A stretch of 64,000 nucleotides of DNA from Ophelia neglecta (taxonomy: Eukaryota). Below are positions 4,720-50,500 of the stretch, in pieces. The number at the start of each line of letters is the position of its first letter. Within the stretch, counting starts at the first letter, position 1. The DNA lies in the NCBI GenBank assembly GCA_965285935.1, contig OZ260663.1, forward strand, positions 60,574,001 through 60,638,000, read 5' to 3'. The notes below the pieces were generated by a model, which had not been told where the DNA came from, did no database searches, and saw only the letters and a program-made list of their open reading frames with translations. Made by a program: the position numbers and the translations under genes.

Positions 4720-5058
4720 TTAAGACCAAATTTGTCCACGAGGACAAGGTATGTTGACTTATTGCAATGTGTTAAGTACACGTCTGCATTGATTTTGCGT
4801 GAAACGGCGTAGAAATACATACATGACTTTTTAAAGCAACTTGTTTGTGTGTCCTAACCAATCATAATGGCTTCCCACGTGTATATTTGCATATTGTTAC
4901 TATGACATCAAAATTAGCCTACCAATGTCAACACAGTAGTAATTTATGCCGTTGACTTAAATTTTGCCGATAGTACACAACACAGCTGAATGCCTTATAA
5001 TTCTCAATACTTCAAATAGTTTACGTACTTTATTGACTATGTTTTTATCTTATTGCAG

Positions 5059-5880
5059 ATTGTTGAGTTTCACCGGTTTGTAATTAAACTACGGGAGAAG
5101 CACCAGTACCCCTTGTCCCATATCTATAATATGGACGAAACTCCCATGAGGTTTGACAGCCCCCACGCCCGTACGCTGGATACAGTTGGTACTAAGACTG
5201 TCCCCATTCGTACCAACGGGGAAGAGAAGAAGGGGTTCACCGTCGTCCTCGCCATGGCAGCAGACGGCAGCAAGGTCAGTCCCCGAGTGATTTTCAAGGG
5301 GAAGCGTGCCCTCGGCGACTCCTGCAGGCAGCCGGGTGCCACAGCCACTGTCCAGGCCAAGGGGTGGATGGACGAGCCCGGCTGTCTGGAGTGGATACGG
5401 GTCACTTTCCCCCTCGGAGCCCCTCGCAAGCTGCTAATGTGGGACTCTTTCGCCGCACATCTCACGGACGCTGTGAAGGCGGAGCTACGACACAGGAACG
5501 TTGACACTGCCGTCATCCCCGGTGGTCTCACCTCCCTCCTGCAGCTCTTGGATGTTTCCGTGAACAAGCCGTTCAAGGATCAGATAAGGGCTGCATGGTC
5601 GGAGTGGATGATAACCAGGGAGCACACCACAACAGCCGGAGGGCGTCAACGCTGCCCAGAGAAGGATGTAGCCATTCGCTGGGTGAGGGAGGCCTGGGCC
5701 GCTATTCCACCAGCCATGGTAAGCAATGCCTTCCTAAAGACAGGCATTGCCAATGCTTTGGATGGCACACAAGACGACGCCATCTACGATGACGAGTGGG
5801 ACATATCCGATGTAGAGGATTTTGATGTAGAGGCCATGTTTGGTAGCGACAGTGAGGAGGAGGACTTTTGGGGTTTTTAG
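5059..5880 (+). mobile_element. pogo-family (DDE_1) transposase terminal exon
   Basis: Motifs NMDETP, KGWMD, LLMWDSFAAH, IPGGLTSLLQ.LDVSVNKPFK and an acidic tail. It is preceded by a pyrimidine-rich acceptor (ttattgcag). The HTH exons are absent. Confidence 0.92.
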
Positions 5881-18576: not shown

Positions 18577-21372
18577 TTTTTTTTTTTTTTTTTTTTTTTT
18601 TTACATTCATTAAGCATATATACAAGTATGACGATTTCAATCAACTTCACTGTCTATTTGAAACATTTGTTCCAAATTGGTAAAATGTCTTTAAATTAGC
18701 AAGTTTTGAAAGTAACATATTCCAATACCTTAGTTTGCACATTGTTTCATCAAGGCTAAATGATTTTGTCTGCATGGGACTATCATTATTTTTACACCAG
18801 TTTACATAGATACTATACAAAATTATGCTTATTAGTACATTCCTAAATTTAGAATGGATGTTTTTACATGTGAATCCTAATACAAGATGTTTCCATTGTA
18901 TGTTACAATTAATGCGTTCACCTATAAACTGCCAAATGCTTTGCACAAATTTACAAGAGTAATATATGTGCATTACATCTTCCATCTCACCACATATCAA
19001 GCATGTATCATTTTCTATAATTTTCCACTTTTTCAGCACACTTCTGCTGATTAATAATTTATGAATTAGTTTGTAATTAAGTTCAGATAATTTTGCATCA
19101 GGCATAGAATGGACTTTCCACATATAGATTTCACCCCATTCTTTACATTCAATTTTAATCTGAAATACTTTCTCCCAATACTTTTCAACATAGGACCTTT
19201 CGAAGTGTTTACTTTTAAGAACCTGGTAGTACATACGTGACTTAATGACACTTATACTGTTCAAATCTGTATATAATTTATCAATATAAATATAACATTT
19301 TGGAATGCAATTTCTCATGTACCTACATTTGTAAAGGTGGATACCATGATACTTCACAATGTTTTTAGTAACTTTCCTAATCTGTATGTATTCGCTTAGC
19401 CAGTTTACTTTACTCTGTAATATATTGAAACAATGATTTTCTTGCAAAAGAGTTCCATCGTTATTAAACAAATCCTTGACATACAAAATTCCAGACTTTA
19501 TCCAATTTTTAAATAGTAGGCATTTTCCATTTATATTGAGCAATGAGTTACACCACAGTGGTTGGTTAAGAACATCATACGTATTCATGTTTTGCAAATC
19601 ATTACGAACATGCTTACATTGAAAAAAAGAGCACATAGCTTGTATATAAAAAGTTGGCAGGCATAGAATAGTATCTACTTCTTTTCTGTCAGTAAAGTAG
19701 CATTTTAATAAGTATTCAAAATTTAAACCATGTTTATGTAAACAGTGGTTAACAATGTTAAGTAATGACGAGTTTTTCAGTATATGACCAACCCATACAG
19801 CCTGCTGTGCTTTAATTTTACTAAACAGATCAACCATATTGAGGCCTCCATCTTTATAGTCACCTATCATGGTGTTTCGCTTAATACGGTCTTTTTTGTT
19901 CCAAATATAATTATATATAACTCTTTGTACTTTTACAATGTATTCAGTAGGCATCTCAAGAATGCTGCTGACATATACAATTTGAGAAATTGCAAAAGTT
20001 TTTACAATGTAGATTTTGCCTCTCAGTGATAATTTTCTGGATTTCCAGACATTGAGAGACATTTCTAATTTCTTAATTTTGTTCATCCAGTTCATAGCAT
20101 TGCATTCTATCCGGTCATGACCAATATAGATACCCAAACATCTTATTGCACCATTTGTAAACTTAATACCATTAAATACATTGGGAAAATCTCTATATTT
20201 GCCAAGCCATATACCTTCACACTTTTCCAGGTTCAATTTTAAGCCAGAAACTGAACAGAAAGATTCAATAACATTAAAAGCATTTACAATTGAGTCCAAA
20301 TCTAGCAAAGCTAGGGTAGAGTCATCTGCATACATGGACACTTTAATCTCTTCATTGCAGAATTTAAAACCACAAATGTTAGAATTATTTCGTATATTAA
20401 TTGCCATAATTTCAAGTGATATTATGAATAACAGAGCTGAGATTGGACATCCCTGTCTTATACCTCGCGAAGTTTCAAAGGAGCATGACAACCACCCATT
20501 ATTCTTTATCAGCATTGTCGGACTATTATATAATATTTTCATCCAGGTAATGAAATATTCACCAAAACCAAATTTATGCAATACCCTAAACATAAAATTC
20601 CAATGTAATCTGTCAAAGGCCTTTTCAAAGTCAAGACATACCAGAGCTCCCTGCCCGTCTGTATTATTACAGTAATCAAATATATCTTGAATTATTCTTG
20701 CATTAATTCCAATGTATCTCCCTTTAATGTACCCACTCTGATTATTATGTATTATGTTGTAAATAACCTTTTGCAATCTTCTAGAAAGAACAAAAGCAAT
20801 AATTTTATAGTCATAATTAGTCAATGATATTGGCCGGTAGTTTTTCAATAAATCCCTTGGTCCTTTCTTATGAAGTAATGCCAATACTGCATGTCTCATA
20901 GATGGAGACATGATACCCGCTTCAAAAGTTTCTGCTACCATGTCAAAAAAAGAATTCTTCAATACATGCCAGAAGGCCTTGTAAAATTCTGGTGTGAGGC
21001 CATCAAGCCCTGGTGATTTACCGTCTTTCATACTTATAACAGCTTGATACAATTCATCTCCAGTTATTACACCTTCGATCATACTCATGTCATTGGCACT
21101 CAATTTTGGAGTTGGTACATTTTGCAAATAATTATCAATGTCATCAGTAGATATAGTTTCACTCTCGTACAAATTTCTATAAAATGTGACACATTCTTTA
21201 AGAATACTACTATTATCTTCGGCTGAATAATTTTCATATGTTATTTTACGAATCACATTGTTTGTTTGTCTGGACTTCTCTAAACCACAAAAATATTTGG
21301 TGGACTTTTCTCCTTTTTCACTCCAATTTACTTTCGATCGAATTATAGTACCACTTGTTACTTCATCTTCTT
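18577..21372 (-). mobile_element. 5'-truncated L1/Tx1-clade LINE with intact RT-zf ORF2 portion
   Basis: Motifs GEKSTKYF, KSPGLDGL, NYRPISL, DFEKAFDR, GIRQGCPIS, YADD and C-terminal CxxC..H...C. Stop at 18647, poly(A) = T run 18577-18602, 12-bp TSD CAAAGGGATGGA (18565-18576, 21373-21384). No endonuclease domain. Confidence 0.96.
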
Positions 21373-21920
21373 CAAAGGGATGGATGGACGAATCTGAGTG
21401 GGTAAGAAGCATCTGTCCCCATGACAGCCCATGCAAGCTTCTCGTCTGGGACTCGTTTTCAGCCCATGTCACCAGCGCAGCGAAGTCAGAGTTAGCCAGA
21501 CGCAACGTTGATGTGGCCATCATCGCAGGCGGACCAACCTCCCTTCTACAGCCCCTCGACGTAGCTTTTAACAAGCCGGTCAAGGACAGCGAGCGTGGTG
21601 CCTGGAACCAGTGGACTAGTGAGGGCGAGCATACCTTCACCCCGGCTGGCCACCAGCGTGCCCCCTCCAAGGAGATGGTCCTTCGCTGGCTGAAGGATGC
21701 ATGGACCACCCTGCCCTCTAGCACCATCTAGAAGGCATTCCGGAAAACCGGGATATCCAACGCCTTGGACGGCACCCAGGATGACTCACTCTGGGAAGAG
21801 TCAGACCACGAGTCAGACAACGAGTCAGATACAGAACTTGACATCTCAGATACGTCAAATTTCTATGTAGAGGCTATGTTCGGTGCTTCTGACCCTGAAG
21901 ATGAGGATCCGAGTCCTGAG
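21373..21920 (+). mobile_element. pogo DDE_1 transposase remnant (copy 2, downstream of the LINE; upstream part 18460-18576)
   Basis: Motifs KGWMD, LLVWDSFSAH, TSLLQPLDVAFNKP, FRKTGI.NALDGTQDD and an acidic tail, with a stop at ~21729. Confidence 0.9.
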
Positions 21921-29428: not shown

Positions 29429-31170
29429 ATGGGGGCAAAAATCAGCTTTACCCAGCTTGAAAAATATGATGGAAAGAAATATATGGCCAAGTGGCCACTG
29501 GTAAAATTTCCTGAAACAAGGAAGAGGGCACCTGGACAAGTCAACATTACATTCAAAGTTCTGCCAAATGGTCAGTTTTTATTTACAAAGAATTAATATA
29601 TATAAAATGCATGTTCCTATGTCAAAGTGTTTTCCAGAGGTTTCCATACCCACCAGTTTATCGTATTAAGGCCACTATTCTTGAAGCCAACATTGTCTTC
29701 TAACAGTGCTGTCAGAAATTAAATATTTGGCTAAATGGTGTTGCAAGAATCAGATCTAAAAAAAGAATTATTTTTCTTTTCAGGCGTGAAAATTCCCACA
29801 CAGGAAATTAACATCTGTACTGGTGGCCAGATGTTAGATTTGTTCCACATGCAGACAATAAGCTGTTGTTTAGTATTGGAACCTTCCGTAAAAGACCAGG
29901 AACTGGACGGCCGCCTGTTTCAGGATACAGAAATATTCATGGATTAATATATGGTCTCAGCATCAATGAAAACAGCCTTAGTCAGTATTACCCCAGCTAA
30001 ATTATATACACTGTTTTTAAGCTGAGTGCGTCTGACTGAGTTGTTTGAAATAATTTCTGGTTCAGAAATGTAGCAATATACTTAAGAATGTCACCAAGCT
30101 GATGTCTCTATGGGCTGACATACATGTATTTGTAATTTACCATATAGAGTCTACATGAAGTAGTATTTTATTTTTCAGATTGTCAGGTGTACAAGGGCAC
30201 TAGGACTTCCTCGAGCCCAAATCTTTCTGCACACCCAAACGGAGTGGATGCTTCATTTGCAGGATGTGGCGCTATTCACCTAATGGATCTCCGAAACCAG
30301 GATATGATTACAAAAAACAAAGATTTGCGCAACAACAATTTCCGTTGTACTGACTGCTCTCCTAATGGTATTTATGTGGCAGCTGTGGCAAAGTGTTCTA
30401 AATTTGTTGAGGTGCATGTGATGATGATTGAAAACTACTTTTTCATGAAGCAGGATGCGGTAGAACTACATCATGTCTGCCCAGGTTTCTATGCAGAAAG
30501 GAACCAATTGGATTATTTTGAATGTAAGTTCTCTCCCGACAGTGGTTACATAGCAGTTGCGTCCTCCCATGGACATCTTGTGGTACTAAAGAGAAGTTTC
30601 CTAAAAGAACACTGCAACATTATTCCGGGAATGTTTGATGTTAACGATGTAAAAATTGTAAATGAGAGATCATTTGATTTTGACCAACGTTACCAACATA
30701 AATATGTAGCATTTGCCAGCATGAACAATGAGGTATTTGTATGCAATGTTGATGAACAGACTGAGGTACATAGGAAATTTGAGGATTTAATAGGAAGCAT
30801 CCAAAATGTGAAATACGGTCCGAGAAGTAGTGGATTAGCCATTGCAACCTCCTCTTCTGTGATATATATTTGTGATCCTGACACTTTGGACACTCTGTAC
30901 GAGCTAAACGGTGCTCAGCAAGGTAACGTTGCCATGAATCCCACTAATGGTAAATATCCAAGCATAGTGAGGATGGCATTTTCCACTGTAGGGGGAAATA
31001 TGGCTGTAACATCAACAGATGGCTACTGCCGAATATGGCAACTTGAGCCAGAGTTGAATCTACAAGAAATATGCAGAATAGCAATTCTGCAGTACTGTGC
31101 TGTTAGCGACATTTCAAAGCTCCCTTTACCACCGAAACTTTTATTTAACCTATTTGATTGGCCAGTTTGA
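29429..31170 (+). CDS. WD40-repeat SOCS-box protein; exons 29429-29570, 29783-29980 (needs a 1-nt frameshift near 29810), 30179-31170
   Basis: WD40-like strands (CSPNGIYVAA, FSPDSGYIAVASSHG, FSTVGGNMAVTSTDGYCRIW) and C-terminal SOCS box LQEICRIAI...ISKLPLPPKL. Upstream exons are inferred from GT-AG sites and phases. The N-terminus is MGAKIS. Confidence 0.8.
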
Positions 31171-35565: not shown

Positions 35566-38500
35566 CTAAGACCGCCTGTATTTCTTCTTCTCATCCTGTT
35601 TCACTTTGAAGAGCATCAAATCCATAGCCGAGATGGCATCCTCACTGCTGTCATGGCCTCCAACTAAAAGTAAACATTTAGAATTCAATGGCCAAAAAAT
35701 GAATACAGAATACAACATAGTCTGTTGGACAAATCTACCATCTGAAATATGGCAAAAAATTTTGCTGCCCTTAAAGTGTTTAATAAAGAGAACTTTTTAG
35801 CTAACACAATTTAGTCTTAATGTCACAATGACATAAATAAAGACAAAATTGTCTCTGTGTGTCACAGCATTGTCAAGATAAAAACATTGGTTTTTAACCC
35901 AATTTTTCCCAATTTGACCTTGAAAATGTAATTCAAGGTAAAATCAGGACAAACAATCAGAATCACATGACACCCTTTCTTATGGTACATCCTAATACCA
36001 ATTCAGGGTCTAACTGCCAAAGAATTGGAATTGGAATTGCAGTATACACTTTTCCATACCCATATTAATTTAAGGTCTAACTGGTTTATTAAAGAAGTTA
36101 TAGTGCATATGAAAAGCATCATTTTTAAAACTATGGTAAATACATATCTTTTGACAGCTACCAAACGTAAATCAGGTCATATCCAATTACTGGTGCTTCT
36201 TTAACCCTGTCAATGTCAATGCCATACCTATATCACTTTTTGTTGTAGTGCTGTCAGCATTTTGCTACTTGACTTGTTGTAAAAAAAAATGTCCCAGGCC
36301 CAAGCATATCAATAACAAAATGGATTTTATGTGCCTAGTTACAGCCTAAACAAAAGTATCCGGTGCTACAGGAGCATGCCTTGAAGCCCAACTAATATCC
36401 TCCCATGTGTTATTTGAAAAAATGGGAATTTATAACATTTGTTGTCAAAAGTAAGATATCAAGCAGATAATTGCCCTTGGTGCCAATTTAAGGAAATAAC
36501 TACATTCTGCACAAATGAAGCTTGAAGACCTGCTTCCTTTTTTGAAAGTTTGCTGATGGAATGTGAACAATCACATTTTATCATTTTATCACCAAAATAA
36601 GTGTTATATTTGAAATGTAAGGCGACTATAAAAATGCCTACCATCATCTTGTATGATTCTCTGCAGGTATTCGGCTGTGAGCGTTTTAAGGCCTCGTTTG
36701 TACGGTGGGCCCAGTCTGTGTGGAAACACCACAGATGTGTCCACTACCTTCCTGTGCATCAACTGTAATGGAATTACCTGATGATGAGCATGACTAATAA
36801 ACAGTTGTATTATAATATTGATTAAACATTTTGTTAGCATAAACATGTATATCATGTATATAAAATGCTGACCCTGCAGTATTTTCAATGTCCCTTAATT
36901 CTCAGTTTCTATAAATATTGCTTATTCAATTGGAACAAATGGAAAGTACATCAATATATTATATACGACAAATCAGCAAACTAATCAAGCCAAACCAAAT
37001 TTACTGCGGTAGAATGGAAAAATTGTGAAGTTTAGGATCATTTTACCAACCTTCAAAGCGATAAAGTCACTTTCCAAGCTGTGTCCAATGAGGATGGTGT
37101 TTTCAGAGAAGAGATTGAGTAGCATGGCCTGTACATCTTTCAATGTGGTGCTCACTGCCTCCAAGTCTCCTTCTTTTATCCCACTAAACCTACAGCAGGA
37201 AGGGTAGAAATAAATAATATGTAATCCCACTACACCTACTGCAGGAAGGGTAGAAATAAATAATATGTAATCTCACTACACCTACAGCAGGAAGGGTAGA
37301 AATAAATAATATGTAATCTCACTACACCTACAGCAGGAAGGGTAGAAATAAATAATATGTAATCCCACTACACCTACAGCAGGAAGGGTAGAAATAAATA
37401 ATATGTAATCCCACTACACCTACAGCAGGAAGGGTAGAAATAAATAATATGTAATCCCACTTCACCTACAGCAGGAAGGATAGAAATAAATAATATGTAA
37501 TCCCACTACACCTACTGCAGGAAGGGTAGAAATAAATAATATGTAATCCCACTAAACCTACAGCAGGAAGGATAGAAATAAATAATATGTAATCCCACTA
37601 CACCTACAGCAGGAAGGGTAGAAATAAATAATATGTAATCCCACTAAACCTACAGCAGGAAGGGTATATGTAATCCCACTACACCTACTGCAGGAAGGGT
37701 AGAAATAAATAATATGTAATCCCACTAAACCTACAGCAGGAAGGATAGAAATAAATAATATGTAATCCCACTACACCTACAGCAGGAAGGGTAGAAATAA
37801 ATAATATGTAATCCCACTAAACCTACAGCAGGAAGGATAGAAATAAATAATATGTAATCCCACTAAACCTACAGCAGGAAGGGTAGAAATAAATAATATG
37901 TAATCCCACTTCACCTACAGCAGGAAGGATAGAAATAAATAATATGTAATCCCACTAAACCTACAGCAGGAAGGATAGAAATAAATAATATGTAATCCCA
38001 CTAAACCTACAGCAGGAAGGGTAGAAATAAATAATATGTAATCCCACTTCACCTACAGCAGGAAGGATAGAAATAAATAATATGTAATCCCACTACACCT
38101 ACTGCAGGAAGGGTAGAAATAAATGAAACTGCAACTCAGATATGGTATAGCGGAAACACAAAATGTACAACAGCGAATCAGTTAACAAGTGAAAATGATG
38201 AAGTTTGCCCTTTGTTCAATTTTTTGTACTAGAAAACCATATTTTACTGGGGATCTTGTTGAATAATCAATGTGACACTTTTCTCTTCACTCACATATCT
38301 AATACAGGTTTCAAATACTTAACAAATAAAACTGATTAAAACTTAAAATATAACATTGACATACCTAGTATTGCAATCTATTACACGTTGACTTGGTTTC
38401 ACTAGTTGATCAAGAACGGTGTCTTTCTTATGGTCAATGACAGTAACTCGGGCCAGCTGCTGGCCAGCCATGGTGTATACCTAAAGTAGGTGAATGTGAA

Positions 38501-41500
38501 AAAAACAGGATATCACAAGGAAAAACACAGGACTGTGTAAACTAGCTTCTACTTGTAATTATCATTTATCCACCACCGACAGCCTTGATGTGATTACCAG
38601 TAAAGGCAGACATACATAACTTAAAGTTTTACCCAATTCACCTATTTCTAGAAATTAAATACATACACTGTAAATGATCTAAGATAGAAAATGCAGTTCT
38701 GATAAAAGACACAGCCTCAGTTAGAGAAAAAGGTTGCGCCGAAGGTATTATCTTCATCTTTATAATCAAAAAGTCTTATAAAGTAACTTTGTTATTCCAA
38801 TACAATACTTCCAACTTTATAATAAAAGTTCATTATTTTCTAAACCTGAAATATAAAAAAAAGTGAGTCTTCTATTAGAACAAATACGGTAGATGCATTA
38901 TGATAAATAACTGACCATTTCACAGTCAAGGGCATATATACCCCAGTTGCCATCTGTCGGAGGGTCTTTTGGTTTTGTTTCAACATAGCCATAGAGATCA
39001 TTGTATTTGTTCCCTTCATGGGTGTGGTACTAAAAAGACATAAAAAGAATCAGATATATAATAAACAAAGCAGTTCTAAGTTCCCATTAATGAGTAAGTA
39101 TCAGTTAATACACTACAGACAGGGCTGTTAGTCAGGACTGCGAGTAGTGTATACTTGTACATGGACATGTTTAATATATTAGAGGCATGTTGCTGTGAAG
39201 CGGCTGGTTGCCATAGTGTAGCTCACATCTGATTCAGTGGTTTGTTGTTTTCAAGCAAGGATCAATGTCACTTGAAAATGTATTTACGCATTATATGATG
39301 CTTCTTCCAAACCACAATGTTGCCCAATATATTTTTTAAGTGTGCAAATGCAAAAAATATTTATGTTAACTAGAGACTGGTCATAATCACAGCTAACTTT
39401 TTTTTTGTTCATTCCAAATATAAGTAAACTCAGTTTCATTGCTGAAGCAATAATTTACACGCATAATAATTCAACTGATTTGTTTAATCAAACCAACAAA
39501 TAATTAATGCAATAAATACAAAATACCATATAATTATGCAATTACCTTTGCTATTTGGCAGCCTTTTGTTCCCATGTCTCCTTGACAACACGTGTAACGG
39601 TTTTCTAATGCACCAGCAACTGTAATATAAATTAATTCATACAATAAATATTTAAATTCTAAGTACTTTTAGCATAAAAATTCAGTGTACATTTATTTTT
39701 GTGACTTAACCTTTTGTACAAACTGCATGTCACAACTACATCCAAGGTCTCAATAAGATGTGCTGCATATGGTTTTTATATCCAATGCATTTCAAAACAC
39801 AAGCTGATGAAATATATGTACACAACACCATTTTGGTAATTTACCTTTGACAAATTTATGTCACCCAAATCACAGTCTCTCAGGTCTCACCAGGATTCAC
39901 ACAAAACAACGTCTACATTTACCTGATTCTTTTATAACATTTAACTGTCTTGAAAATGAAGCTGGACTACATAGTTAGTATCAATTTATTTTGTTTACCA
40001 TCATTTATTAATACCTGTCAATGATGGCAGGGCAGCTTTAAATCTGTTTGTGGATCGTGTTACGAGTTTATTTGTCAAATGTTTTGTACTTAAAGTAGTG
40101 ATAGTTGCTTCCTCGCTCTCAAGTAGTTTACCAGACAATATTCCCCAGCATTATTACTCCAAGAGTACATAATGATTTCTGAGGTCAAAGTGGTTGTTTT
40201 ATGTACCGTAGAGAAGTTAAGGTTGTGTTAGTGGAGGAAGAGGACAAAGCACATTATATAGTTAAATCCCCCCTTTTTTAAGAAAAAAGCTACAATTAAA
40301 TTGACTTTCATTGGCAAAACACAGATTTGTTAAGAACTGGAGGTCCCCAAATGCCGACGAAAATGCAACCCAAAATAAAAAAATTCCGAAATACACAACA
40401 ATAGGAACAATAAGATTTCAAAGGTGTCTTTATTCAAATAGTTATTTTTATAAATAACATGCTAATTAAATAATATTCACCACACATAAACACTAGTTCT
40501 CATTACATTTATTTTTAGTTTACACACTCTGAAAAAGTTTCACAAAATATATTATAACCAAATCTGGGAACATTTATTTATATTTACCAACAGTCCCATT
40601 GTGCTCTATCACCTCTGTCTTAGAATGTTGCTCTACCCCTCCAACTATTTTAACTTCCAACAGGCCTGCAAGATGGTGACAGTCACTCACCCAATAATCT
40701 ATTATTTAGCATCAGCTCAGGATGCTAATAAAACTATGTACTTATATACTTGTACTGTTAAAATATTTTGTCTACAATAAATACATACCAGCTAGGGTTC
40801 GTGCTTATGCTGTCCCAGTATATTTTTTACATATAAATATTGATTGGGTTGCTAAATAAAATAATTTGCAGCTGAATATACTGGAGGGCAACATTTTCAC
40901 AAAATTAAATTGATTCACCCCATTAAAAAAAGCTAGAACGAACACTTCATACTAATATCTGAAGTATTTCATGAGAGCCTTGGCTAGTCCATCATGGCGA
41001 CAGCATTTCAAATCTTCCCTCAGCAATTTACTCAAACCAGGGAGACCCTTGCTTCTGGCAATTTCCTTCAGGTCTTCATACTTGTACCCTGCTCCTGCTA
41101 TAGCACAGGCAATTGCTGAACTACGAACAATGTTGCTATCTACTAGGAGTTGAATAGATGGAAAGCAATCTAGGATATTTTCTGTCCACTTCAAGATGTA
41201 ATCAACAAAATCAGCATTCACAACCCAGCTGTGTCTGCACAAATCTTCTTTTTTCAATTGTGGCATACCTAGGATATCAAGTAATGCCTTGGCATCACTG
41301 ATGCCTTCATGATGTTCATGGGTTCTGGGTCCCCTCGGACATAGTTGGCCGACCAACTCGGGCAGGGCATACGATCTCAGTCCAGGATAAACTTGATACA
41401 TTATGGGCAAGGAATCAGCCATACCAATTACAGCATCACAGAAATCCACATCTAAACCACACTTCTTTAAGGACTTGATCAAAATTGGACAGTCAAATAT

Positions 41501-44500
41501 CTTGCCATTGTGAGCAACAAGCAATGGTTTCAAAGGACAATCTTTGAGCCAATCTATGAACTTCAGGAGACCTTCTTTAAGCTCACAAGTGTCCAACTCT
41601 TCTCCATTCCTCAGCAGCTTTTCCCCAGCAACTTTTATGCCAGTTGCTTTCTCGGCAGATGCCGTCATCTGACAGGTAGGATGGATAAAACAGTTAAAAC
41701 TTTCTTCTGTTCCATCGCTCCGCTTGTAAATGGCCCCTATCTGCACTATTTTGGGGTTAGTGGCTGCAACAAGGGTAAAAACATGGAAATGATGATGCAA
41801 TATTAAGAAATATTAATCATGAAGATCATAACAGTGCACTTGTATTTTTTCCATTATTTTCTAGCAACGAAGTCTGAATGCAGAGGGAGAGGGACGGGAA
41901 AACGCCAGAAATCAAGGGAGTGGGTCCTCAATAAATGACTTCTGAATTTAAGGGCCTTATTCACCCATAGAATTAAAAAATCAGGGGTGATTTTACCACT
42001 CAATTTACCAAATAAAGGTTTAGTGGTCAGATTAGGCAATATGGCCTCACTTTATGCCTGTTTCTAAGTGAAAATTGTACATATCCAGGTGACTGAATTT
42101 ACACAGGCCAAGGGTAAAAAGTATTCAATACAGCAAGGGATTTAATTGAATTAATTATGGTTACATGTTATTCATAATACCCCTAGACTGTCGGAAATTA
42201 AAGTGAGGGCAGAAATTGAAATAAAAACTTGATTTCTTACGCATTAAGCCAGTTCCTTCTAGATCTAAGGCTACAACCGTGAAAGAGTCCGTCGTAGGCA
42301 CCGGCAGGTAGTTTGGTTGATTACTGCAAGCCATTATGTGGTTGACGAAAATATCTCAGATAGAATTAATATCAAACCATTACCCAGGAGAGACCTTCAT
42401 AAATAGCAGATGTTTGAAATGACTCTATTAGACTTCTAGAAATGCTTGCAACAGCAAAGGGAACTTTTTACCCTGGTAACTTGCTGATTGGTTGCGAGGT
42501 CTTTCACCAGAGGCAATTGAATAAACATTGAAAAGCGTCACTGCTTGATTTGCCAGAAAGTGAAATTCATGGAAATATTCATAATGTCAAGGGATGATTT
42601 TTTTTCACTCCCATACATGGAGACAATAAGATCTTTCTTACTTGCTTGAACACAAATATTCTGGAGTGTAACCAATATAACATTTAGCTATAAAATTTCC
42701 TTATATTTAATAGTGTGCTAATATATTCCATACAAACAATAATGCCCCAACTACACTTGTTGAGTATAGAACTGTGGTAACTGGAAAGTAGGAATATGTA
42801 TACTCTATAATACAAGTACATTTAATGATTACACTTGTAAAAAGGACTATTTGTGATCATGAATCTTATGAGCTCTGAAATAAAATCTCCAAACAGAAAG
42901 CTGATTATACCGGCTTATCACTGCATGCTTAGGGGCTTTCTGCCACATTGGTTTTTAAACTTTATTGCTAATTTGTTAATCATAAATGGTTATTTAACAA
43001 TGATAAAATCATATTGCAAAGTTAAAACACATATAATTATACCAGGGGCCTGTGCTAAATGGTCTAGATTGTTTTTGTACATTCTAATGTGCATAATTAT
43101 GTGCTAGATGAATTTAACACCATTGTAAATGGAGATATTGTGCTCTAAATGCTTTTTAATTAAGTATTCAAACTGCAATGTTCATATAGGTATATATATA
43201 TAGCAGGCCCAAGGCGACATTTGCTCTTGATTGACATGAAGAGTCGATTTTTTTCATTTGCATTTAATGTGTAGTGTACAGTCTGAAGAAATCATGCAGA
43301 GCTGTACTTTGCTTTTTATGCCCAAGTTTGTAAGGAGGAATTGTATGAGAGTAAACACTGTGATCAACAAAGGGTGCAAGGTATATGAAACCAACTACCG
43401 GGGTATAAAACTAGTAAAACAGGAAAGCATGGTGAAAGCTGTGTACAAAATTTATTGAACAGTAAATGTTGAACATTCATAGACTTACATCAAACACTAA
43501 GGAAAATAGCATTACAGAAAAACAGCAAGTATATATGTATTCACAATAGTCTAGACCTTCGATATACTCATGTAGTTGATAAGGAAACACAATAGAAATA
43601 CAACACAGGTTGAGACAGTCCATGGGTGGTGTACTATTGTCACAATTCAAAGTTCAATGAGACTTGTACAAGCAGCCAGAGAAATGTGATGACTACGAGG
43701 TATAGAATGTCAAATTTTTATTATTGCTTTGAAATTAGCATGATATTGATTATATCTCTTTCGAGAATTTCACAATACAAACTGGAATGTTCATTTATAT
43801 TATATTCTTCTAGTCAAATGCATTTGATATTTGGTGTGAAAGCACTGTAAGCTATTATTGGAAAAGCACTATATAAATGTTTTAAAACAAATAAAATAAA
43901 TAAGTTTAAAAACTGGTATTGATGCCAAGGGCTACTTTTTAGTTAATACAAACTTTTTAATACCGGTAGTAGGAATATCACAATCAATTTTTTGGGACAG
44001 AAAAAAACATGGAAAATTGCTTTAATTCTGAGACCATTGGTAAGTATGAGGCAAGCGATATTTCAAAGAAAAGCAAAGTCATAGGAAAAAATAGCGAATC
44101 ATTTTTATATTCACTTGAAGTATCTCACAAGGGCTCTAGCAAGTCCATCATTACGGCAACATTTCAAATCAACCATCAGCAGTTTTCTGATCCCTGAGAG
44201 ACCCCTGTTTAGAGTTAAATTCTTTAGGTCCTCAAATTTGTACCCCGCTCCTGATATTGCTGCAGATATAGCTGAACTTCGGATGATGTTGATCGTACAG
44301 AGGAGTTGGATTGATGGGTAGCATTGTCGAATATTGTCAGTCCATTTCATGATGTAGTCCACAAAGCTGGAGGAGACCTGCCAGCTATGACTACATAGAG
44401 CCTCTTTATTGGCTTTAGGTGCTTGTAACAAACCCAATAAGGTTTTAGCATCACTCAAGCCCTCATGCATGTCACGTGCAATCCATTCTGTCGAAATCAT

Positions 44501-47500
44501 TGGTCGTAGATCCGAGGCTATATCATCAAGACAATATGACTCGTGGCCTGGATAAATATCTCTCACCATGGTAAGGGAATCGGCCATACCAGTGATGGCC
44601 TGACAAAATTCAGTATCTAGTCCATGAATCTTGATGGACCTGATCAAAACAGGACAGTCATACATCGTACAATTGTGTGCCACAAGCAATGGTTTCAATG
44701 GGCAATCCTTTAGCCACTTGACGAATTTCTCGAGGCCTTCTTTAGGCGTACAGGTATCCAGTTCTTTTCCGTTACGAAGCAACTTGTCAGCAGTCACCTT
44801 GAACCCTGTGACTCTCTCAGCCTGTGCTGACATCTTACAGGGAGGATGAATGTAGCAACTAAAACTTGTCTCTGTCTGATCATTTTGCTTGTAGACAGCA
44901 GCAATCTGTATGATCTCTGGGTTGGTTGCTGCAAGAAAACATATTTTTGTTATTCATCCTGAAATATACCTATCAAATGTGGGAAAATTGGTTAATGTAT
45001 GAATGCTGGGACTAATACATTGTACAGCAGTGATATGTTCCTGGCATGCTAAAATAAACATCCTAAGTTGTTAAGTAGTACAGAAAGGTTATCATATCTT
45101 ATTACCTAGGATATCATATCATACTTTTTTTATAAACAACAATATTAAAGTTGATCTAACTCACCTAGCAAGCCTGTTCCTTCCAGATCAAAGGCTACCA
45201 CTGTAAACGCATTTGACATGGGCACCTTTTCTAAGTTTGGTAAACAGAGGGGAGACATATCGCGGGTTTTATAGCAAGTTCTATCAACAGACTGATTTGA
45301 ACTGAACCTTACCAATCCTACATCAACTAGGGAATGTCACGGACAGACAAGGACAATTGTGTGTACACCACTTCAACAAACAAACATCTGATTCAATTAT
45401 TGATCAATCCCAGAAAAGGCAAGTAATTATACTATCAACATTATAGTAGGCCTATAAACCAGGAGCAAAACTGAATCAAAGATTTATGAAAATTTTACAT
45501 GCTTTAGTTATTGTTCTATACATAATAATCAAACATAGCCTATACACTTTCTGGGAAACCAGAACCAAAACTGAATCAAAGCTTTTTGGAAATTTTATAT
45601 GCTATAGTTATTGTACTATCCATAATGTTTCAACTAGGCCTCTACTCTTTCTGGGAAACCAGAACCAAAACTTCAACCAAGTTTTTGGAAATTTGCCAGC
45701 CTATAAATAATGTGCATTAGATTTTCTTGAAATTGATAAGAACTCAACATTTGGCAAGGCAATCCTTGAAATTCATTGAGAATGAAAAACAGGTACTTCA
45801 AATTGTTCATGGGATTTTTTGGGGACTGGTTTTTTTTAGGATGGAAAAATAAACTGCTGTATTGTTTATTTTCTGCAAAATCAAAATAGGAAAGTAATCC
45901 TTTTTTGATTTTTGATTCTTATTATCTTGACATTGAATGTAAATTTGCTTTCTGGTTTCACTTTCCTAAAAAATAAAGCTCATGATGCTTCTACAATTAA
46001 TATTTTTACTCACTTCTGCGTTTCCATGACTTTCCCCAGTGGTAGTTACATTCTTCTTGCTTGACATATTTACCCTTGTGTGTTATACTGAACATGCCAC
46101 CACAACGACAACATGTCTTTTGAAGAGCTGCAATTATATCAAGTATAGTTTTCAATATGAGGGTAGACACTTATGAAAGCCTTCAATGAATCAATGAATC
46201 CATTATTTCTTAATTTCTTTTTTTTTCTTATTTCACATACACCTTACTCTAGTTTCAAAATAATTAACAAAAACCACAAGTAAAAAGCAAAACAAAACAC
46301 TATAGTGTAACATAATAATTCTATAAATATTAAATTTTAGTTAATTGTTATTTTGTGTCTTTCAACACAATGATATTAAGGGATCCTGCTAGTGACACAA
46401 TGAAGAGAACCCCAGCCAATGTTGCACAATATTAAAAAAATTATACTTCAATGAATTCAATGAGGAAAATTCTTGTGGTACAATATAAACTACTAAGTAG
46501 TGTGAAAATGATTAGGAACACATACGAAGAGCCATATAAATACATACGATCTTTGGGTTCTGGCTTGGCATAGTCAGGTTTTTTTAGAGTGACACTGCCT
46601 GGATTAAGTGGGTCTGGAACTGGGAAGCCATTCTGCACTAGCTGATCAGCTGTCAACACGTAAGTGCTCAGACTCTGGTATAAACCAGCACCTGGCAAAA
46701 ACATTGTCCATTAGAGTAAAGGTATTGTACATATGACAGCACTAATTGGAATGGCACATCCCTATGTTCAGAGGCCTAGAATAAATGTTATGGGCCTCAT
46801 TTGGGTAGCCTTAACTGCTAAGTGTAAACAAGGATATATTAATATTAAATAATCACAATGATATTTATCAAGGTAATACCTTTTTTGTGAGTTTAAGGTG
46901 AATGCCCTATTGATGTGTGACCCTACTTACCACTCAAGTTGTAGCAAGAATAATTTCATATAAAGCTATGACCACACATGCAATAACTGTGTTCCCCACA
47001 CTACAATTATGTTAAGAGGACACTCTTGCCTTGCAAATATCAACATATTTTATTAGTTACACAGTTCTGTACTTACTGGTCAATGGGGCAGCTGATTTGG
47101 TGCCTGTCCCACATCTATGGAGAGTGAAGCTGGTGGAGGCTGCCTTGGCCCCTCCCAGCAGGGCTTCATGGGAGAAGGTACGGGGGTTATGAGGAGTTGC
47201 TCCCTTGGGCTGGTTCTGAGATCCCTCCAGTCTCAGCTTATGTACAGCATTGATAGCTAAGTTGAGGTAGATTTTCTTGGAAATACTGCGACTGTAAACT
47301 GACTTTTCTTCACAAACAGCCTAATGAAATTAAAAGAAATACATATAGAAAGAAATCGGCAGGGGTAAACTAACTTTATGTAGGTAAAGAATTAAACATA
47401 AATATGAACAAATAAAATGAAAGGGTCATTTAACACTTATTTTCATAACAAAATCTGCACAAATTAAGCGATTGGAAATCATCTATTAGCATACAAATGA

Positions 47501-50500
47501 AGTTTTTTCAGTATTTTAATATTCACATGAAAACTTACTCTCTCAAATGCATCTTGATCCAAAGTGTAAATTTTGAGACATTCATCAATGAAATTGTTGA
47601 GATATCTCTGTCTTATGTTAGTTGGCACTTTTCCACTGTTATCTGCCTCTACAATAGGTCTTCTTAGGGCATTCTGAAAACGTATATATGTGACCTGATG
47701 ATTCAATACCAAAATATACCAATAAGTTCTATTTGTTTCTTAATTTTATAGGGATGTCTTTTAAGATGGCTTCCCTAGTAACTTTTCTATAATAACATGA
47801 TTGTTTTACACAGTCATACCCATTGGTTACATACCTTTTGTGGCAAATGAGCAAATCGTTTTCCAGAGGCAGTACTACAGGCAGTTCTTCCATTACTTGT
47901 ACTAGCACCGGATATTAATAGAGAACTAGATTTTTTCTTCAGCAGTCCTGCCCCTAATTTCTTCAGAGCTTGTCCAGACTGTGTGTGGGCCTTACGGGTG
48001 ACCTGGGAAGCTTCTGCTTTCTGAATAGTAAAATGAACATTTAATATAATCTAAACAATAACTCTTACCTATATGTTTGTCAATAGCAATATTCAAATTG
48101 AGGTTTAAGCTAGTTTATCTGCTGCAAGAGGAAAACGAAAAAAAATCACAATTAAACTCAAACATACTTTGCTATAATGATTTAACAGGGACATTGGAGA
48201 CTTATTCCCATCCTCCTGAAATCAACATAAAAAGGGCTTAAGGGACAGTGCACAACAGAAAAAACAGAAACTGACTTTTTTTTTTCTTTTGAACAGCATT
48301 TGTCACATATTATAAGGGTACTATGAATCTGAAAAGTTTGCCACAATAAAGTGGAAGATTTTAGGAGTATCTTGAAATTTCTTAGAAAAAATTCATAGAA
48401 TAACTTACAAGTTGAAATGTTTCCTAAACACAGTATAACATAAGGATGTACGTTGTTTGATATAAAGCAAATTTTTAAAAATGTTCCTAAACAACATTTT
48501 CATACTACAATATCTAGGGTACCGTATTCTTTGTTATATGCTCTCCAGTCTTAATTAGCACCCATGCTCTTTATATTTTGACCCATTTCAAAGAGTTTTG
48601 CAGTTTTAAGCTTAAAACGGTCACACAAATATTTACGCCCCCTGGGCTCTTATCACAGAGAATATGGTATACCTAATTAATATTAACTGACAAATGATCC
48701 TGTACCAGTAAAAATGTTCATGTGGGTTTAAACCTTATCGAATTTTGCAAAAAAAGCACTCAGTCATTAAATCAAAACTCCTGAAATAAAAACTCCACAA
48801 ACTGTCAATTTTTTTTCAAATGCTAATTTAAACCTGCGGGAACATTTTAACCATTACAGTAAACACTGTATGTGATATACTGACTGAGGAGGAGTTTGAG
48901 AGAGCTGGTTGTTCCTTGGCCTTATTTATGGATTCCCATCTGTCTCTCATATCCTTCTGTATGTCACTGAATCTATTCATCATCACTTGGGCAGGGGTGG
49001 GACGAGGCTTTGGTCTATTGATATTTGATGTCTTAATTAGCTGCAATGATACCAAGCATTCAAATACAATCAAAATGTTATATTTTATATAGATGTACAT
49101 TGTATATACAAAAAAAACAATATACAAACAACAAAATCTGGACTTAACAAATGTAGGCCTACAAATTTTGAAATATTACTAAAAACCTCAGGCCTCAGAA
49201 CACATTTTTGGTATCTGTTTTTTTAATAATACCAGATAGTCATAATAAATAATACCCAAAAAGAGTTGATTTTATTGTCAGTCCATTTTTTTACGCATTT
49301 ATATCAAATTGCTGAACACTGAATCATTAGTTTTAAATACAAGCTACCGAGGCCTTGACACTCCAGTTTACTGTAAATATAATAACCAGACAAGACATAG
49401 ACACCATAGAGAAACTCACAGACTGATGATCAGGGTTGTGGGCCACACGTTTATGGACACTTGCTAATGAGGTGCCTTCTCCTTCGGTTAGCACATTGGA
49501 TTTCTGTAAAACACATATTTGATTCCCTTTTTACAAACTGAATTATTTTTCATATACTGTACTATTAAATTATCAAACCATTGCTGTTCCAAAAAGGTGA
49601 TACATATCACACATGAAGGAAATGGCTGGAAATTTTCAAAAAACATGTTCACAACGGTATTTGGACTCCTGTGTTTCGGATACGTCAATAGTAGTAATAT
49701 AAATAAATAAAGCTACAAATAATTCTTAAAGGAACGGTTCTGGCCATATATTAATGTACCTATTCAACTAAAATGGATAGATTACAAAAGTGCATCCCAA
49801 ACAGTGCCTGACAGATTTGATAGAATATAGCCATTTGTAAAGTAAATATATTAAAACATTTCATATTTATTGGTATTACTGATTCATATTAAATATATGT
49901 AGTTAATTAAGGTAAAACTACATTTTTACCAAAACAAATACCTCTTTTTTGTCTAGAGCATAATGTTTCTCCTCTTCATCTGTAAAGTAGTCTAGACATT
50001 CATCAAATGTGCCATCCTGTCCTGGCAGTCCATGGCTAGCCTCCACTTCACTAAACAGCTCTACCCCATCACTCAAACTTAGCTTTGCCTAGCCACATTA
50101 ATAAAATAAACACATACATATAAGCATTGTTGGAATATTTTTAATTTTTAATTAGTAAATTACACTTTAATAGTTATTTCTTCTAGCAAACAGGCAATTA
50201 CTATATAAACAAACCTTAACTGGTACTCTTATGATGGGACACAGGCAGAAAATAATCTGGATGTCACTTTGCTTTTAACAATGTTAAAGATGCAGTACAT
50301 TTGGTTCAAAGTACATGACACTCATTATATTTGAGAGGTATATTTTATACTCTAGAGATCACTGAAGGTCTCTATTGCATTCCTAAATTGATGGAGACTG
50401 CACTGTCAGTAAAAACAATGTGTCATGTTTCTTTTGGTAAGTAATGCAGATCTGAAGCTTATATCTGCCAAAATAGAAGTCAGTAAATTAATCATTGGCT

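Follow-up and report, generated by a model that had tools for sequence, protein, structure and literature searches.

The PML C-terminal exonuclease-like domain and fish Plex9 have been described only in jawed vertebrates. Zebrafish Plex9.1, solved as PDB entry 9MRC (PMC13659232), belongs to the PML-like exon 9 proteins (PMC10123124). In PML-1's C-terminal domain (PXL) an exonuclease-like domain (EXO) is joined to a SAM-like domain, an arrangement reported among its structural homologues only for PXL and Exuperantia (Exu), and human PXL, with three of its four DEDD residues lost, is no nuclease (PMC13659232). Drosophila Exu (5L80) is a pseudo-nuclease as well; it serves as an RNA-localisation factor, dimerises and has a SAM_Exu family of its own. 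TREX1 and TREX2, 3′-5′ DNA exonucleases of the DEDDh fold, limit LINE-1 and cytosolic DNA. A DEDDh nuclease is also carried by mobile elements. Kolobok transposons duplicate TTAA and have 5′-RR...YY-3′ termini, and it is their KolobokD lineage that encodes the DEDDh enzyme (Kojima and Bao 2022, PMC9587614). Here we describe two tandem genes of this nuclease family, copies A and B, nested in an intron of a REXO1-like gene of Ophelia neglecta. They lie in a window of 64,000 nucleotides (assembly GCA_965285935.1, contig OZ260663.1; G000:C5:60574001-60638000) of a 762-Mb genome, and all positions below are those of this window. The reading that we favour, with a probability of about 0.6, is that A and B are a host-resident, transposon-free tandem pair encoding DEDDh exonucleases of the EXO + SAM-like layout, which would form an old sub-lineage of their own in the Plex9/PML/KolobokD family, derived from Kolobok and kept by selection.

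Both genes lie on the minus strand, as does REXO1, within the intron 39620-46013, and each consists of two exons. Exon 1 of copy B (45165..45258) is 94 nt long, starts with the ATG at 45258, carries the ExoI motif as FDLEGTGL and ends in phase 1 before the donor GTGAGT at 45164. Its exon 2 with the stop (44111..44928) has 271 in-frame codons (44926-44114) followed by the stop codon 44113-44111 and encodes the rest of EXO and the SAM-like tail. Copy A has an exon 1 of the same 94 nt (42241..42334, ATG at 42334), also with ExoI and a phase-1 end, before the donor GTAAGA at 42240. Its exon 2 with the stop (40952..41763; 269 in-frame codons 41761-40955, stop codon 40954-40952) contains the ExoII Asp (D90), the ExoIII motif H151-x4-D156, a connector helix and the SAM-like tail. 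The first exons both encode (L/F)DLEGTGL, the splice sites fit the consensus, both introns are in phase 1 and a pyrimidine tract precedes each acceptor. The N-termini of two intronless relatives, P0004 and P0179, can be aligned with the peptides encoded by exon 1, and the alignment takes in an LPxLL motif close to the start; this homology supports both the start codons and the splice model. The predicted product of each copy is a stand-alone protein of about 300 amino acids, and the exon-2 products are 59% identical. A first-pass annotation of this DNA had proposed two intact two-exon DEDDh genes in the REXO1 intron, and all its coordinates hold. Searches and folds were made with exon 2, or with exon 1 separately, the exons not being joined.

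By sequence and by structure A and B stand nearer to the Plex9/PML-type nucleases than to TREX, ERI1 or DnaQ, so that the nearest characterised relatives are those which the first-pass annotation had named. Exon 2 alone matches the Pfam family RNase_T (PF00929) with 40.0 bits (E 7.4e-10) in copy A and 37.2 bits (E 5.4e-9) in copy B, and against a cut-off of 24 these scores are not a chance match. The DEDDh set is complete in both copies: DLE is encoded by exon 1, and the ExoII Asp and the ExoIII H-x4-D by exon 2, where D90, H151 and D156 of copy A occupy invariant or near-invariant columns of the family alignments. A single-sequence search of PDB returned four entries named 'exodeoxyribonuclease III' (9L8B, 9L85, 9MRD and 9MRC) with E-values from 7.5e-22 for 9L8B to 1e-12, Plex9.1 (9MRD/9MRC) being at about 1e-13. 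The fifth match, the PolC exonuclease domain 2p1j, was far weaker (E 0.001), and TREX1 and Exu were found in PDB only by profile search (TREX1/2 at E of about 1e-8).

The AlphaFold2 model of copy A has a predicted local distance difference test score (pLDDT) of 95.3; it covers exon 2, and the first beta-strand with ExoI, encoded by exon 1, is absent from it. Fold searches with this model placed Plex9.1 at the top (Z 23.4, root-mean-square deviation (rmsd) 1.2 Å over 167 residues), followed by the EXO domain of Exu (Z 20) and TREX1/2 (Z about 18). A HMMER search against 1.84 billion protein representatives gave 1208 relatives, none of them above 36% identity, with a fish 'exodeoxyribonuclease III' of Cottoperca gobio (P0003, 34%) as the top match. 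As judged from their sequences, A and B are DEDDh (DnaQ-like) exonucleases with an intact active site. Retrocopying of REXO1, which the first-pass annotation had already rejected as their source, is ruled out, since the nested genes contain introns and are of another family.

The second domain is the helical tail. It comprises residues 183-269 of copy A exon 2, and its model shows three shorter helices after a long connector helix. Folded by itself, the tail reached a pLDDT of 96.1, and an unbiased fold search with it against 48,161 PDB representatives gave the SAM-like domain of Exu as the best match (Z 5.8, rmsd 1.9 Å) and then a run of true SAM domains (Z 5.0-5.7); the matches agree with one another, though at modest Z values. 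With the isolated tail Foldseek gave no significant match. The Pfam family PML_C (PF25244) is matched by 106 of the 112 full-length family members, and a profile-profile comparison by hhalign of A/B-type tails with PML_C-positive tails gave 97.1% (E 4.8e-11). From the fold matches and the profile-profile comparison, the layout of A and B is therefore EXO followed by a SAM-like domain that is probably homologous to PML_C. The tails of the A/B sub-lineage lack the basic GKxRVT segment of typical tails. This type of tail had been called typical of both the PML C-terminal domain and Plex9. The probable homology to PML_C is in line with the first part of the claim; the second does not stand, as the Plex9.1 structures and the fish proteins P0003 and P0007 are EXO-only.

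How do A and B compare with the described systems? The closest solved structures, by sequence and by fold, are those of zebrafish Plex9.1 and the fish 'exodeoxyribonuclease III' proteins. Plex9.1 is, like A and B, a small stand-alone protein with an intact DEDDh site. However, identity with the fish proteins is 24-36%, and these are EXO-only or tandem EXO, without the SAM-like tail. The genomic context is also different: fish plex9 are vertebrate genes syntenic with the pml locus, whereas the context of A and B is REXO1 and not a pml-like locus. In the tree the fish pair stands apart from the A/B clade, and we do not regard A and B as orthologs of vertebrate plex9 or pml. PXL of PML-1 has the same two-domain layout; in contrast to it, A and B retain all DEDD residues and lack the RBCC/TRIM part. 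Exu, in which the EXO-like and SAM-like domains are arranged in the same way, is about 19% identical to A and B. TREX1 and TREX2 share the DEDDh fold with A and B, but they have no SAM-like tail and are not members of the family. The KolobokD nuclease, which occurs in molluscs, arthropods and cnidarians, shares with A and B the protein family and probably also the EXO + PML_C layout. Unlike it, A and B are accompanied by no PF20700 transposase, terminal inverted repeats, TTAA ends or further copies, and they form a separate clade. The motifs differ too, being DLEGTG and HEG(I/L)SD in A and B versus DLETTG and AHNAxxD in the KolobokD type.

The same genome holds other paralogs of A and B, and these are mobile. 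Thirty-two further matches, 23-34% identical, fall into near-identical groups, and the copies that we fetched lie in elements of 5.4-6.5 kb which are 98-99% identical between chromosomes. These young multicopy elements are represented by L031:565-6599 and L032:568-6607, by L037:3241-8602 and L038:1444-6796, and by the pairs L033/L034 and L035/L036. In each, open reading frames (ORFs) of the Mutator-like transposase PF20700 lie upstream, on the same strand, of a two-exon EXO + PML_C nuclease. The elements end in ...CC followed by TTAA, with only the 3′ ends clearly defined. Judged by these sequence features, the elements fit the KolobokD type. The first-pass annotation had named KolobokP as the DEDDh-bearing lineage, which has to be corrected to KolobokD, because KolobokP encodes a His-Me finger nuclease (PMC9587614). 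Dispersed copies inside transposons, which the same annotation had counted as evidence against host genes, are found for these other paralogs, though A and B themselves occupy a single locus.

Among public proteins, six of the ten long matches scanned (P0006, P0044, P0054, P0056, P0083 and P0086) unite PF20700, RNase_T and PML_C, each in a single polypeptide, and these fusions show that PML_C is common in transposon proteins. A phase-1 intron two to three codons after DLE(T/G)TG is common to A, B and five transposon-borne paralogs, which argues that A, B and the transposon copies are related at the DNA level and not through retrocopying. In this genome and in public data, most of the family is accessory nucleases of Kolobok-type transposons; such transposon-linked members are numerous across several phyla, and the nearest clusters are mostly molluscan. 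In one further protein, P0098 (848 amino acids), which is Ku70/Ku80-like and has the domains Ku_N, Ku and Ku_C, a C-terminal exonuclease domain of the family of A and B is attached; such a union of an end-binding protein and a 3′-5′ exonuclease is unusual.

Within the genome A and B have no close relative but one another (the nearest further paralog shares 34% identity), and the DNA of their intron is unique there except for a 150-bp repeat at 40794-40946. No inverted repeats were found in 39620-46013, and tblastn with nine transposase queries against the window gave nothing at E <0.4, in agreement with the first reading of the sequence, which had seen neither a transposase nor terminal inverted repeats nearby. 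Third codon positions of A and B are 46% identical versus 72-79% at positions 1 and 2, and the ratio of non-synonymous to synonymous substitution rates (dN/dS) is 0.15-0.20, not near 1, at saturated dS (1.4-2.0). Constraint is strongest in the tail, where dN/dS is 0.10. Both copies look to be kept by purifying selection, as had been supposed earlier from their open frames and common exon structure. Since A and B are sister genes that lie side by side and have the same structure, their divergence most likely accrued after duplication in place, and the constraint then acted in the host genome.

Maximum-likelihood trees unite A and B with support 100/99 and join them to the P0004/P0179 pair, encoded on contig L042 of ENA sample ERZ25069296, in a clade with support 100/98 that lies outside the transposase-linked radiation. 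The WD40-SOCS gene that adjoins REXO1 in our window has an ortholog, 64% identical, in this sample too, which indicates that the sample comes from a related organism. The L042 pair likewise consists of tandem genes on one strand; both lack introns, and they are 55% identical to each other, with dN/dS of 0.18-0.24. A profile search with the sub-lineage found the L042 pair and EXO-only proteins of about 220 amino acids, and nothing else. On these sequence comparisons we place A and B in a sub-lineage that is new and transposon-free, within an already known nuclease family.

The EXO-only proteins (P0001 and relatives) deserve separate mention. Three members carry a name, and all of these come from copepods: transcripts of Acartia fossae, a second transcriptome of eukprot, and P0193 of Eurytemora carolleeae. 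For most members no source is named. They have a stretch NGEEL...LKEGL...WLK in common with copy A and lack the SAM-like tail, and their placement beside the A/B clade is weak (support 60). As to the second contig used from ERZ25069296, L043 (ctg22846), no REXO1 was found within 10 kb of the WD40-SOCS ortholog. On this contig the gene calls lie about 129 bp away from where the WD40 ORF really is, and translation of several of them with table 11 runs into stops.

If A and B descend from a mobile element, the locus may have formed in a few steps. A Kolobok-type nuclease gene would have lost its transposase and its ends, after which duplication in place inside the REXO1 intron and retention by purifying selection would have produced the present pair. 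The products are probably host-maintained, domesticated and active 3′-5′ exonucleases, to judge from their intact sites and the constraint on their sequences. By homology with Plex9.1 and TREX1 they would act through two-metal hydrolysis from free 3′ ends of DNA, the SAM-like domain may aid nucleic-acid binding or self-association, and trimming of transposon, viral or stray DNA is a plausible role. Several points weigh against this reading. The Pfam model of PML_C itself gives copy A 19.9 bits against a cut-off of 27.1, and copy B does not match it. The low dN/dS could come partly from an earlier transposon phase, though only if A and B were separate insertions. Among about 15 billion proteins the sub-lineage is present in one other organism only, at 35% identity, and the evidence of conservation is thin. 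No REXO1 exon was found within 7 kb downstream of the L042 pair, whose contig begins 115 bp upstream. The tree is unrooted and also compatible with capture of a host gene by Kolobok, and it gives fish Plex9 no firm place relative to A and B. Finally, DNA rather than RNA is suggested as the substrate solely by similarity to Plex9.1 and TREX1 (PMC10123124).

These points leave room for other histories. The pair could be the inert remains of non-autonomous insertions of the KolobokD type, one or two in number and ancient, without host function and with frames open by luck. Such a relic would suit the transposon-borne state of almost the entire family, the agreement in intron position and phase with the transposon copies, and the dispersed repeat that abuts copy A. 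We nevertheless hold it improbable. The 100/99 clade, the adjacency, the common strand and the equal first exons point to duplication in place, and synonymous divergence has since reached saturation while dN/dS stayed low and the frames and all four splice sites remained intact. Moreover, no transposase, terminal inverted repeats or sister copies are left, and a related organism keeps a similar selected pair. A reverse history would give the genes the same function: A and B would come from a never-mobile ancestral animal EXO + SAM gene, from which Kolobok and, separately, PML/Plex9 acquired their nuclease. Both the clade of A, B and the L042 pair and the fish Plex9 pair branch outside the transposase-linked radiation, near the midpoint of the unrooted tree, and Exu gives an example of a non-mobile EXO-SAM host protein. 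Yet the root position comes from a midpoint drawing only, and orthologs of an old host gene should be more widespread, whereas this sub-lineage is known from two organisms as against the numerous transposon-linked members in several phyla. We therefore consider descent from a never-mobile gene unlikely, though not negligible.

Two further readings concern what the locus makes. REXO1 might be the main user of the second exons, as alternative 3′ terminal exons of its own, through junctions 46014>44928 or 46014>41763, giving fusions without ExoI. The REXO1 exon ending at 46014 does so in phase 1 with the donor GTGAGT, the nested second exons on the same strand start in phase 1, and the in-frame arithmetic of such chimeric splicing, pointed out in the first-pass annotation, is right. 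But the fused product would be without two catalytic residues, and both first exons keep their ATG, N-terminal motif and ExoI, conserved between the copies and in the intronless relatives; this use of the exons seems very improbable to us. Scarcely any weight can be given to the idea that A and B are proteins of the Exu/PXL kind and not working nucleases. It has in its favour the EXO-SAM layout common to A, B, Exu and PXL, but Exu and PXL have lost DEDD residues (PMC13659232), and in A and B the full set is present, at some of the most conserved alignment positions in the family. The domesticated nuclease pair remains the reading that we prefer.

The host gene can be followed on both sides of the nested pair, all on the minus strand. 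The host intron (39620..46013) is bounded by GT at 46013-46012 and AG at 39621-39620 in agreement with the reading frames. Upstream of it lies a Cys-rich exon (46014..46127; ...CCRCGG...), whose 5′ boundary was placed from the AG at 46129-46128, and downstream, directly after the AG, is the exon 39546..39619, which encodes a ...RYTCCQGD... segment. An exon with ALDCEM was read at 39029-38916, and the GHSLESD motif lies within the ORF 36985-37230. The EloA-BP1 domain (PF15870) matches the REXO1 exon ORFs 47479-47712 and 46441-46704 (E 5.7e-15 and 1.8e-8). By this domain and the C-terminal DEDDh domain with its DCEM/GHSLESD motifs, we identify the host as a REXO1-like gene. The simplest view of the nesting of A and B inside a further DEDDh gene is that the insertion site fell there by coincidence. 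The nesting is a curiosity, and it would matter only if both units interfere in transcription or splicing.

Two repeats flank the nested genes. The dispersed repeat of about 150 bp (40794..40946) starts 6 bp past the stop codon of copy A and has at least 39 other copies in the genome, 70-81% identical. It probably belongs to the 3′ untranslated region of copy A. It looks like a short interspersed nuclear element (SINE) or a miniature inverted-repeat transposable element (MITE), and it gave no tRNA or Rfam match. The tandem repeat (45456..45713; about 2.6 copies of a 100-bp unit, 75-88% identical) lies between the REXO1 exon and copy B, 200-450 bp upstream of its ATG, and could be promoter-proximal to copy B; the genome search found no further occurrence of it. 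Rfam and tRNA scans of 39000-47000 gave nothing. PolyA and TATA hexamers are present but uninformative given the AT-rich DNA.

Other features of the window lie outside the REXO1 intron. The ORF 30187-31170 (plus strand) beside REXO1 encodes a single-exon WD40 + SOCS-box protein of 327 amino acids, and its sole database relative at E<=1e-20 is the 64%-identical protein of ERZ25069296. Judged by eye, the ORF 18647-21727 (minus strand, 1026 amino acids) resembles the reverse transcriptase of a long interspersed nuclear element, the ORF 5053-5880 (plus strand, 275 amino acids) is similar to a DDE transposase, and further transposon-like ORFs are present at 1779-2988.

What may the pair mean for the history of the family? 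The searched literature does not address the origin of the PML/Plex9 nuclease domain, and we found no paper in it linking PML/Plex9 to Kolobok nucleases. More tentatively, A and B together with the pair of the related organism might be an independent invertebrate domestication of a Kolobok EXO-SAM nuclease into a defence DNase, parallel to PML exon 9 and Plex9, with PML-1's C-terminal domain itself descended from Kolobok; we regard this as possible, with the odds against it. In A and B, a catalytically intact EXO-SAM protein of the PML/Plex9 family would be present as a selected, transposon-free gene pair in an invertebrate. The locus thereby offers a concrete, testable case of transposon-nuclease domestication, and it may point to a candidate source for the PML/Plex9 domain.

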